Source of the DNA: Macrostomum lignano
Lineage: Eukaryota
Direction of reading: 5' to 3'
DNA length: 64,000 bases
Assembly: GCA_002269645.1 (NCBI GenBank)
Contig: NIVC01000868.1
Coordinates: 299,275-363,274, forward strand
Shown: positions 38,601 through 41,600 of the stretch, piece by piece
Position numbering within the stretch: the stretch's first letter is position 1
Layout of the letters: the number at the start of each line of letters is the position of its first letter
Made by a program: the position numbers and the translations under genes
The notes under the pieces: generated by a model
The model's database searches: none
The model's input: the letters and a program-made list of their open reading frames with translations, nothing else
Told to the model about the DNA's origin: nothing

Positions 38601-41600
38601 TGAGGAGATGGGTTGGGGAGAGACTGGGGGAATGAGGAGATGGGATGGGAGAGACTGGGGGAATGAGGAGATGGGATGGGGAGAGACTGGGGGAATGAGG
38701 AGATGGGATGGGGAGAGACTAGGGGAATTAGGAGATGGGATGGGGAGAGACTGGGGGAATGAGATGGGATGGGGAGAGAACGTGGGAGGAGAAGATGGGA
38801 TGGGAGAGACTGGGGAGGAGAAGATGGGATGGGAGAGACTGGGGAGGAGAAGATGGGATGGGAGAGACTTGTGGGAGGATATGGGATGGGAGAGACTTGT
38901 GGGAGGAGATGGGATGGGAGAGACTTGTGGGAGTATATGGGATGGGAGAGACTTGTGGGAGGAGATGGGATGGGAGAGACTTGTGGGAGGATATGGGATG
39001 GGAGAGACTTGTGGGAGGAGATGGGATGGGAGAGACTTGTGGGAGGAGATGGGATGGGAGAGACTTGTGGGAGGAGATGGGATGGGAGAGACTTGTGGGA
39101 GGATATGGGATGGGAGAGACTTGTGGGAGGAGATGGGATGGGAGAGACTTGTGGGAGGATATGGGATGGGAGAGACTTGTGGGAGGAGATGGGATGGGAG
39201 AGACTTGTGGGAGGATATGGAATGGGAGAGACTTGTGGGAGGAGATGGGATGGGAGAGAACGGGGGATGAGGAGATGGGATGGGAGAGACTTGTGGGAGA
39301 AGATGGGATGGGAGATACTGGAGATGAGATGGGGAGGAGAGTGTGAGAGGAAAAACACACCTTGCGCATACAAAGTGTCAATCACAGCCCCTTCACAGAG
39401 TTTAGTGCCAAGCGTTAGGGCGATGTCAAAGTTCTTCGATTCCGCCTTCCGACCCTTCTGGCCATAGACGGCAAGCAGTTCCGATTCAGAGGAGGAAGGG
39501 GAGGCAGCCCGAACCCAGAGCTGAGGCTGCTGCCGCTTTGAGACTCCGCCTGACCACCCGCCCCGGTTGCAGAATTCTCGCTGAGACCCGGCAGGCCAGA
39601 CAGAAGGACGGACGGACATGCTGGGCAAGGTGAGTGGCCGGCTGATGAGGACTGAGCGGGAAACTGGCCAGCGAGGATTTGGCTAATTTGGGATCAGCTG
39701 TCTAGCTAGCTAAGGTTAGGAGCTACGGTTGCTTGAGACTGGATTAGCTGCAGTACCATCGTAACTATAGTAGTGAGATGCCGGCCACGCGTCTGAGATG
39801 GCTGGGGCAAAAGCTAAAACTGTGGGAAAAAATTAAAAAGTGCATATACGTAATTGCCGATCATTTTCAATAAGCTTCTTTTAAACATTAGCTTAAATTA
39901 ATTTTTTTGCAATTATTCTTGAATCAGGGACAGACAAACAGACAGACACACACACAGAAAGACAGACAGACAGACAGACAGACAGACAGACAGACACACA
40001 GAAAGACAGACAGACAGACAGACGGACAGACAGGCAGGCAGGCAGACAGACAGACAGACAGAGAGACAGACAGACAGACAGACAGACAGACAGACAGACA
40101 GACAGACAGACAGACAGACAGACAGACAGACAGACAGACAGACAGGTAGACACACACAGACAGACAGACAGACAGACAGACAGACAGACAGACAGACAGA
40201 CAGACAGACAGACAGACAGACAGACAGACAGACAGACAGACAGACAGACAGACAGACAGGCACCGCCCGTACCCGCAGACAGTCAGCGTGCACATTGGGC
40301 AGGCGGGCTGCCAGCTGGGCCACGCGGTCTGGGAGCTGTACTGCCTGGAGCATGGCGTCCAAGCAGACGGCCGGGCCGGTCCGTGGAAGGCCTGCGCCAG
40401 GGAGACGGCTGAGTCGGCATTCAGCCGCAATGGCAACCGGTTCACGCCGCGGGCGGTCATGTGCGACACGGACCCGACCGTGATAGACGAGGTTCGACAC
40501 GGCGCCTACAGGCAGCTGTTCGCGCCTGACTGCCTCATCTCGCACAAGGAGGGCGCGGCGGGCAACTACGCCGTGGGCCGGAACGCGGTTGGTCGGGCCA
40601 TCCTGCCACAGGTGTCGCAGGCGGTGCGGCGGCAGGCGGAGGCCTGCGACCGCCTGGAGGGCCTGATCTTGTACCATTCGTACGGCGGTGGCACGGGGTC
40701 CGGCTTCACGCCGCTGCTCATGGAGAGCCTGCGCAACAGCTACGGCAGGAAGACGCTGCTGCAGATGGCCGTGTACCCTTCACCAAAGTGAGCTGCTGGA
40801 GTTCTCCACGAAATCTTGCTGATTTGGCTTTGTAGGTGGCCATTCAGACTCACCGTGGAAATGCCTAGGCTGTGCTTGCTGTGTATCATGGACAGGTAGG
40901 TAGGGCGACAGGTTCACGCTGTGGAGTAGCCAATGCCATACTGGAGTGACGCTCTATAGAGTATGCCATGCTGGAGTGACGCTCTATAGAGTATGCCATG
41001 CTGGAGTGACACTATAGAGTATGCCATGCTGGAGTGACACTCTATAGAGTATGCCATGCTGGAGTGACGCTCTATAGAGTATGCCATACTGGAGTGACGC
41101 TCTATAGAGTATGCCATACTGGAGTGACACTATAGAGTATACCATGCTGGAGTGACACTCTATAGAGTATGCCATGCTGGAGTGACACTATAGAGTATGC
41201 CATGCTGGAGTGACACTATAGAGTATGCCATGCTGGAGTGACACTATAGAGTATGCCATGCTGGAGTGACACTATAGAGTATGCCATGCTGGAGTGACAC
41301 TATAGAGTATGCCATGTTGGAGTGACACTATAGAGTATGCCATGCTGGAGTGACACTATAGAGTATGCCATGCTGGAGTGACGCTCTATAGAGTATGCCA
41401 TGCTGGAGTGACACTATAGAGTATGCCATGCTGGAGTGACGCTCTATAGAGTATGCCATGCTGGAGTGACACTATAGAGTATGCCATACTGGAGTGACGC
41501 TCTATAGAGTAGGCCATGCTGGAGTGACACTATAGAGTATGCCATGCTGGAGTGACGCTCTATAGAGTATGCCATGCTGGAGTGACACTATAGAGTATGC

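Follow-up and report, generated by a model that had tools for sequence, protein, structure and literature searches.

To our knowledge, acetylation of lysine 40 (K40) of alpha-tubulin is the only well-established modification in the microtubule lumen, and what its writer, aTAT1, requires of the loop sequence around this lysine has, as far as we know, not been settled. It is the stable, long-lived microtubules that become acetylated. Elsewhere in the same protein, Glu254 is the catalytic residue with which alpha-tubulin promotes the hydrolysis of GTP on the adjacent beta subunit. At the level of gene organization, nested gene pairs are mostly functionally unrelated.

According to reviews, loop peptides are poor substrates of aTAT1, whose specificity comes from extensive interaction with the body of tubulin. 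Residues 38-41 have been crystallised with aTAT1 as a bisubstrate analogue. According to a preprint (10.64898/2026.07.08.736797), the loop is anchored by residues 51-53, and its limited freedom constrains catalysis. A naturally rewritten loop that keeps just the lysine would offer a natural test of the loop requirements of aTAT1. Here we describe such a loop in a tubulin of Macrostomum lignano and compare its locus with the known systems.

Results

An intact four-exon alpha-tubulin-like gene

Over 4.5 kb the window, which is the whole stretch of 64,000 nucleotides that was analysed, matches contig NIVC01000868.1 (assembly GCA_002269645.1) with 100% identity; on this contig the gene is annotated as BOX15_Mlig015062g1 (P0403). 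Positions 40279-40470 form the first part of exon 2 in an intact Macrostomum lignano gene that has four exons and encodes an alpha-tubulin-like protein. The gene has the following features:

39618..39629, plus strand: tubulin exon 1, ATG CTG GGC AAG encoding MLGK, followed by a GT donor; this N-terminus is common to P0121, P0403 and P0404
39929..40259, no strand: (GACA)n microsatellite of 83 copies, filling tubulin intron 1 directly upstream of exon 2
40279..40787, plus strand: tubulin exon 2, which covers S1, H1, the H1-S2 loop and, with its GGGTGSG, the GTPase domain as far as the counterpart of alpha-tubulin residue 176; AG and GT splice sites
40933..41701, no strand: 28-nt minisatellite in tubulin intron 2
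41935..42292, plus strand: tubulin exon 3, aligned with alpha-tubulin 176-276 and beyond (E=9e-20), with D254 at the position of the catalytic E254
42301..42872, no strand: 32/33-nt minisatellite in tubulin intron 3, whose GCTGGAGTGAC core is common to the intron-2 array
43026..43799, plus strand: tubulin exon 4 with the stop codon, encoding the C-terminal domain aligned with alpha-tubulin 297-435 (E=5e-13) and a non-acidic repeat tail
43467..43796, plus strand: disordered Gly/Pro/Ser/Lys-rich repeat tail of DGSGL and GPGSKSP units with a YYEE end; the copy number differs between loci

Exon 2 comprises 169 codons and opens at 40279 after a cccgcag acceptor, position 40470 being the final base of codon T68. 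All junctions of the spliced model are GT-AG and its 550-aa product is read without interruption, while micro- or minisatellites occupy all three introns. The public model PAA68340.1 agrees with the 4-codon first exon (MLGK), and it is because of this exon that the lysine of the loop is numbered K41 and not K40. Exon 2 matched the Pfam family Tubulin (PF00091) with E=3e-42 and, in a phmmer search of PDB chains, residues 3-176 of alpha-tubulin with E=4e-53. Exon 4 alone scored 25 bits against Tubulin_C, just below the Pfam cut-off; PF03953 is recorded for the whole protein P0121.

Near-identical copies were found at two more loci, NIVC01001402.1 (Mlig020438g1, P0121) and NIVC01001360.1 (Mlig020544g1, P0404), both with the N-terminus and junctions of the window gene. 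Such redundancy is expected, because the assembly contains large duplicated blocks. All of the closest proteins to the nested tubulin come from Macrostomum lignano, and both GenBank and UniProt already list the protein, uncharacterised, under the name 'tubulin alpha chain'. The M. lignano papers that we searched make no mention of Mlig020438, Mlig015062 or Mlig020544 in their main texts or supplements, and we found in that literature neither proteomic or antibody data on this isotype nor its expression pattern. Since the Mlig_3_7 gene models were built from genome-guided RNA-seq assemblies with TransDecoder (PMC5730564), the annotated tubulin models imply transcription and splicing of the nested tubulin.

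The nested tubulin is under strong purifying selection

Over 440 codons, 15 of the changes between the window copy and that of locus L001 are synonymous and 2 are nonsynonymous (omega 0.043, binomial p=7e-8), and the remaining pairs among the three homeologous loci gave omega values of 0.05-0.10. None of the three loci shows damage to the open reading frame or to its canonical splice sites. The nested tubulin is thus under strong purifying selection. Within loop codons 36-61 the copies differ by one synonymous and zero nonsynonymous changes, and as whole sequences they are too similar to single out K41.

These values bear on the explanation that the tubulin-like frame comes from a pseudogene in decay or from faulty annotation and that its lysine has no meaning. 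Several public models are indeed frameshifted, one of them (P0001) lacks residues W40-R45, identity to other tubulins is very low, and exon 4 falls short of the Pfam C-terminal cut-off as noted above. Against this stand the intact frame and splice sites at three loci, omega values of 0.04-0.10, a confidently predicted fold with nucleotide-binding motifs kept, and an annotation based on RNA-seq (PMC5730564); the frameshifted models go back to an earlier assembly that is prone to errors, and the GT...AG ends of the 18-nt gap account for its absence from the model. We consider this explanation highly improbable and reject it, given the low omega and the intact frame and splice sites.

Two further origins were rejected. 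The nested tubulin is not a processed retrocopy, because it has three introns, and a viral or mobile-element origin is contradicted by the ordinary metazoan neighbours of the locus, namely a TRP channel, a sugar transporter, an SCAF11-like gene and a phosphatase.

The tubulin lies antisense within an aTAT1/MEC-17 gene, probably in its intron 5

On the other strand, the tubulin gene is flanked on both sides by coding exons of a gene for the acetyltransferase aTAT1/MEC-17:

35645..37195, exon bounds approximate, minus strand: region of the host 3' coding exons, encoding a low-complexity C-terminal tail, with the stop at about 35645-35647 and homology to L001 6576-7755
37200..45228, lower bound approximate, minus strand: host intron 5, probably spanning the whole tubulin coding region, which is on the opposite strand
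45229..46434, minus strand: host aTAT1/MEC-17 catalytic domain of 190 aa, exons 46434-46340, 45959-45896, 45818-45727, 45619-45448 and 45376-45229

Single host exons matched Pfam PF05301 (MEC-17/aTAT1) with E=4e-27 and 2e-19. Joined, the five exons, which have good splice sites, align over residues 1-189 with solved aTAT1 (E=5e-58), and the catalytic domain is 51% identical to zebrafish aTAT1 (4hkf_A) from end to end. The CVLDFYV, QRHGYG (acetyl-CoA loop) and DRPSPKF motifs are kept. The catalytic Cys and Asp of aTAT1 and the roles of its conserved residues have been described (PMC4964394), and the host keeps the residues that align with this Cys and Asp.

The same layout is seen at the other loci. 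At L001 the tubulin (10001-13742, plus strand) is enclosed by a minus-strand PF05301 gene at 6576-16060 that encodes 415 aa, and at L003 the tubulin (10001-14372) is enclosed by an annotated host span of 5560-16599. The window is collinear with both. Its host catalytic exons lie above 45229 and the 3'-exon homology below about 37.2 kb, which would place the tubulin coding region in host intron 5. The host 3' region of the window is open in several frames and many splice combinations fit it, and two trial splice models for the 415-aa host protein of L001 gave no exact match to annotated proteins. The window's own GenBank record carries no host annotation, though the host exons are intact.

We conclude that the nested tubulin lies antisense within the aTAT1/MEC-17 gene, probably wholly inside intron 5, the lower bound of this intron being approximate. 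The 'host enzyme' that the original prediction spoke of is therefore real, as the PF05301 exons, the joined alignment and the enclosing annotated spans demonstrate. In the literature searched we found no paper on a tubulin nested in an aTAT1 gene, or on these genes at all, and the nesting of a substrate-family gene in the gene of its modifying enzyme appears to be unreported. This nesting is of more interest than the lysine itself.

A divergent alpha-tubulin so far found in M. lignano

The AlphaFold model of the nested tubulin (mean pLDDT 85, pTM 0.84) falls below pLDDT 50 from residue 441 on, in accordance with a disordered tail. In Foldseek it superposes on the A/C chains of tubulin complexes, which we take by PDB convention to be the alpha subunits, with TM scores of 0.92-0.95 and rmsd of 1.5-2.0 A among the best 50 matches. 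The best 60 PDB sequence matches of exon 2 are all alpha chains. The nucleotide-binding signature is kept, with GGGTGSG present and G141-G146 in nearly invariant columns; the S9-S10 segment is of the alpha type and aligns without gaps, and the long alpha-type H1-S2 loop is present.

Other parts depart from this pattern. An Asp aligns with the E of 'vtefqtnl' in 9r4x_A, the position of the catalytic Glu254, and this D254 is found in five of five copies. About 8 residues are missing before S9, and H12 is less acidic than in canonical alpha-tubulin. Instead of the acidic Glu-rich C-terminal tail, which is absent, the protein carries DGSGL/GPGSKSP repeats that end in YYEE, and with the number of repeats the total length differs across copies from 489 to 560 aa. 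The nested protein is alpha-tubulin-like in fold, yet not an ordinary isotype, because Glu254, the acidic tail and the conserved K40 context are all absent.

An exhaustive search of 1.84 billion representatives, run in HMMER with P0121 as query, left the range from about 50% to 88% identity empty and returned no orthologue outside M. lignano in the databases scanned. The next relatives in this set are ordinary alpha-tubulins at 37-41% identity. The protein is an alpha-tubulin isotype of Macrostomum lignano that is highly divergent and restricted to its lineage. With omega low today, divergence extreme and no orthologue in the flatworms sequenced so far, the Macrostomum lineage may have gone through a phase of rapid change earlier on.

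K41 and the rewritten H1-S2 loop

Three features of exon 2 concern the loop:

40372..40446, plus strand: rewritten variable H1-S2 ('K40') loop, R36-T60, 3 residues below canonical length
40383..40400, plus strand: 18 nt encoding W40-R45, starting with GT and ending with AG; missing from P0001
40387..40389, plus strand: K41 codon AAG, positional equivalent of alpha-tubulin K40; the same residue in five M. lignano copies

In the HMMER alignments K41 stands opposite K40 in every solved alpha-tubulin displayed, without a gap from the HG..DG end of H1 to the lysine, and five residues intervene between G and K in the nested tubulin and in canonical alpha-tubulins alike. In the AlphaFold model, residue 41 lies in coil between H1 (11-29) and S2 (63-67), while the stretch R36-T60 is mostly coil with a 4-residue helix (45-48) and short strands. 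Alignment and model together support K41 as the positional homologue of K40. The original prediction, which had placed this peptide in this frame and its lysine at the distance of K40 from HG..DG, is borne out in both respects, and in the structural model K41 likewise stays at the K40 position.

Beyond the lysine little of the loop is retained. From K to PRAV, the phmmer alignments with PDB chains contain two gaps of 3 residues in total, and a motif-anchored count from G to PRAV gives 25 residues compared with 28 in canonical representatives; the two agree with the predicted shortening by 3 aa. None of the five residues before K41 and none of the nine after it match the canonical loop. The claim that every flanking residue differs holds over this distance and fails farther on, where F, S and G are kept. 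The stretch equivalent to residues 38-41 reads P-W-K-A, in place of the S-D-K-T or S-D-K-I of the canonical representatives retrieved, so that a Trp directly precedes K41; small residues lie on its C-terminal side. Between the lysine and the anchored part of the loop, the tether lacks 2 residues of the canonical one, and Ala replaces one of the two anchoring Phe.

As to the conservation of K41, to which the prediction had also pointed, the residue is identical in five of five M. lignano copies, which are too close to one another to be informative. The low-quality UniProt model P0001, frameshifted elsewhere too, lacks W40-R45 and hence K41. This gap is probably a prediction artefact, in which a mini-intron was predicted at GT...AG. 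Frameshifts also affect several other WormBase/UniProt entries for these loci, which derive from the older assembly.

How much weight the lysine can bear was estimated from 76 alpha-like tubulins, each the representative of a cluster, that the exhaustive search had returned; 27 have a canonical loop with its lysine and 49 a non-canonical loop. A lysine at +6 was present in 3 of the 49 non-canonical loops (6%), and in 1 of 45 representatives of a first set. Rewritten loops show no tendency to retain lysine at this position. With Lys making up 3.2% (14/440) of the globular part of the nested tubulin and the frequency in non-canonical loops as given, the chance of a lysine at +6 is about 3-6%, which for one post hoc observation is suggestive, not decisive. 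By itself the lysine is a modest lead.

Discussion

The sequence of the loop cannot tell whether K41 is acetylated. The original prediction had taken it either as a private substrate that co-evolved with the host enzyme or as a decoy or acetylation-resistant isotype, an either/or that is close to exhaustive. Co-evolution is disfavoured because the host enzyme shows no sign of adaptation, its catalytic domain being canonical, with 51% identity to zebrafish aTAT1 and its motifs kept. For a decoy we see no evidence. The prediction also took it as established that aTAT1 recognises the acidic residue next to K40; the sources consulted on recognition speak of the 38-41 analogue, the weakness of peptide substrates and the tubulin body, and not of this residue.

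Our main reading, to which we give about an even chance, is that K41 is a poor substrate or a non-substrate of the host-encoded enzyme and the lysine a remnant or the result of chance. We infer this from the changed neighbours in the 38-41 stretch, the tether shorter by 2 residues, the replacement of an anchoring Phe by Ala and the canonical enzyme. On this reading, the host-encoded aTAT1 would at best use K41 poorly, the lysine would be an ancestral remnant or a chance occurrence, and the nested isotype might be a tubulin with little acetylation, used to build polymers that are specialised and probably very stable. Such polymers are proposed because of the Asp at the Glu254 position and the lack of an acidic tail.

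Several points run against a poor substrate. Chance alone would put a lysine at exactly +6 in just 3-6% of cases. Moreover, the gene sits inside that of the sole enzyme known to modify this position, which is hard to dismiss as unrelated. Acetylation, too, is a mark of stable, long-lived microtubules.

Nor need changed flanks abolish acetylation, because aTAT1 is said to owe most of its specificity to the tubulin body and to use peptides poorly. K41 could be a genuine acetylation site, with the surrounding aTAT1 reading the tubulin body and the luminal geometry of the loop and the nesting linking the expression of enzyme and substrate. The spacing from H1 to the lysine, which is exactly that of K40, the rarity of K at +6 in rewritten loops (3/49), the nesting in aTAT1 at three loci, the intact and conserved host catalytic domain, the recognition that reportedly reaches beyond the loop and the small residues on the C-terminal side of K41 all fit this explanation. 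It has to account for changes at all of the neighbours -2, -1, +1 and +2, with a bulky Trp at -1, for a loop shorter than the canonical one and for a host enzyme without adaptation; antisense nesting, too, may equally mean interference as co-expression. We regard genuine acetylation as possible, if somewhat doubtful. A more specific proposal, that the aTAT1 gene carries a private substrate in its intron, with K41 acetylated and the antisense nesting either coupling the expression of writer and substrate or making it mutually exclusive, seems unlikely to us. If true, the locus would be a self-contained module for special stable microtubules, possibly in the germ line.

K41 might also be kept for another reason: it could carry a different lysine modification, touch a luminal protein or matter for the structure. 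Methylation of K40 by SETD2 (PMC8294582) and contacts of the K40 loop with luminal proteins in cilia (PMC6994238) have been described, and the amino acids of the loop are the same in the copies. As the copies are too similar to set K41 apart and canonical loop contacts rely on residues that are changed in the nested tubulin, we find such a role quite improbable.

If acetyl-K41 exists, the loop sequence would be of little weight and the tubulin body would dominate recognition; if it does not exist, the nested tubulin would show that an isotype can evade this modification. The nesting of a substrate-family gene in an enzyme gene is relevant to the tubulin code as well as to the regulation of nested genes. 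Taken with the nesting, the strong constraint on the gene and the unusual biochemistry of its product, the lysine poses a concrete question.

Comparison with known systems

Canonical metazoan alpha-tubulins (PDB 3du7_A and 7quc_A; C. elegans MEC-12, 8y9f_B) share with the nested tubulin the fold, the nucleotide-binding residues and S9-S10, as well as a long H1-S2 loop with a Lys six residues past the DG that ends H1. At 37-40% identity, the nested tubulin differs from them in the flanks of this lysine, the length of the loop, Glu254, the region before S9, H12 and the tail. Another M. lignano isotype (P0003/P0019/P0054, BOX15_Mlig030473g3 and relatives) is likewise an alpha-tubulin with a non-canonical H1-S2 loop, and is about 52% identical to the nested tubulin over the N-terminal domain. 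Its loop lysine, however, is at +8 and not at +6, and elsewhere it is far nearer to canonical alpha-tubulin than the nested protein is.

The 190-residue N-terminal domain of the host aligns end to end with known enzymes of the aTAT1/MEC-17/ATAT-2 family (PF05301; 4hkf, 4gs4, 4pk2, 8y9f_C). Unlike these, the host has a low-complexity, species-specific C-terminal tail and carries a tubulin, probably in intron 5. The arrangement itself resembles the intronic antisense nested pairs of other animals, in which a complete, intron-bearing guest gene lies within one intron of the host on the other strand, as the tubulin probably does. What distinguishes the M. lignano locus from such pairs is that here an enzyme family hosts its main known substrate family.

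A divergent tubulin nested in an aTAT1/MEC-17 gene

Intron 5 of an aTAT1/MEC-17 acetyltransferase gene probably holds the divergent alpha-tubulin gene, in antisense orientation. The catalytic exons of this host are intact in the window, yet the gene is without annotation in the window's own GenBank record. The tubulin-in-aTAT1 arrangement is common to three homeologous loci, namely that of the window and those on NIVC01001402.1 and NIVC01001360.1, and the sugar transporter ORF lies in synteny at all three. Judged from the ORF matches of the neighbours, the chromosomal surroundings of the pair are ordinary metazoan.

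Features of the window
11397-12731, ORF matching the TRP channel and ankyrin families
30163-30981, ORF matching the sugar transporter family
35645-46434, minus strand, host aTAT1/MEC-17 region, surrounding the tubulin (39618-43799, plus strand)
39929-40259, (GACA)n array, tubulin intron
40383-40400, plus strand, 18-nt stretch with GT at its start and AG at its end, coding for W40-R45
40933-41701, 28-mer array, tubulin intron
42301-42872, 32/33-mer array, tubulin intron
43467-43796, plus strand, C-terminal tail, tandem repeat rich in Gly/Pro/Ser/Lys (DGSGL, GPGSKSP)
52301-53437, ORF matching a SCAF11-like C-terminal domain
57122-58123, ORF matching the PHOSPHO-type phosphatase family

Base composition and tandem repeats

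The tubulin coding sequence (within 39618-43799) has a GC content of 65% and a GC3 of 81%. Along the host exons (45229-46434) GC climbs from 37% to 58%, and the host 5′ end is contained in an AT-rich block at 46-50 kb (GC 34-39%). All tubulin introns are occupied by tandem arrays; the 28-mer and 32/33-mer arrays have the core GCTGGAGTGAC in common, and minisatellites are unusually abundant across the whole 64-kb window (55 TRF rows).

Protein features of the nested tubulin

The UniProt model A0A1I8FQP2 lacks exactly W40-R45, including K41, the positional equivalent of K40; this gap is probably a mini-intron predicted within a low-quality model. Asp is found opposite the catalytic Glu254 of alpha-tubulin in all five copies (D254, exon at 41935-42292), which might slow GTP hydrolysis on the adjacent beta subunit if the nested tubulin enters microtubules.

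The tail carries its tandem repeat in place of acidic sequence. Repeat number varies among copies (protein lengths 489-560 aa), and the public model of the window locus (P0403) has 500 aa, 50 residues fewer than the direct reading of the window.

Comparison with other M. lignano alpha-tubulins

No canonical H1-S2 ('K40') loop occurred among the M. lignano alpha-tubulins matched in our searches, which were not aimed at canonical isotypes. The loop is likewise non-canonical in a second isotype encoded at other loci (P0003, P0019 and P0054), whose lysine, counted from the DG ending H1, is at +8 rather than at +6 as in the nested tubulin.
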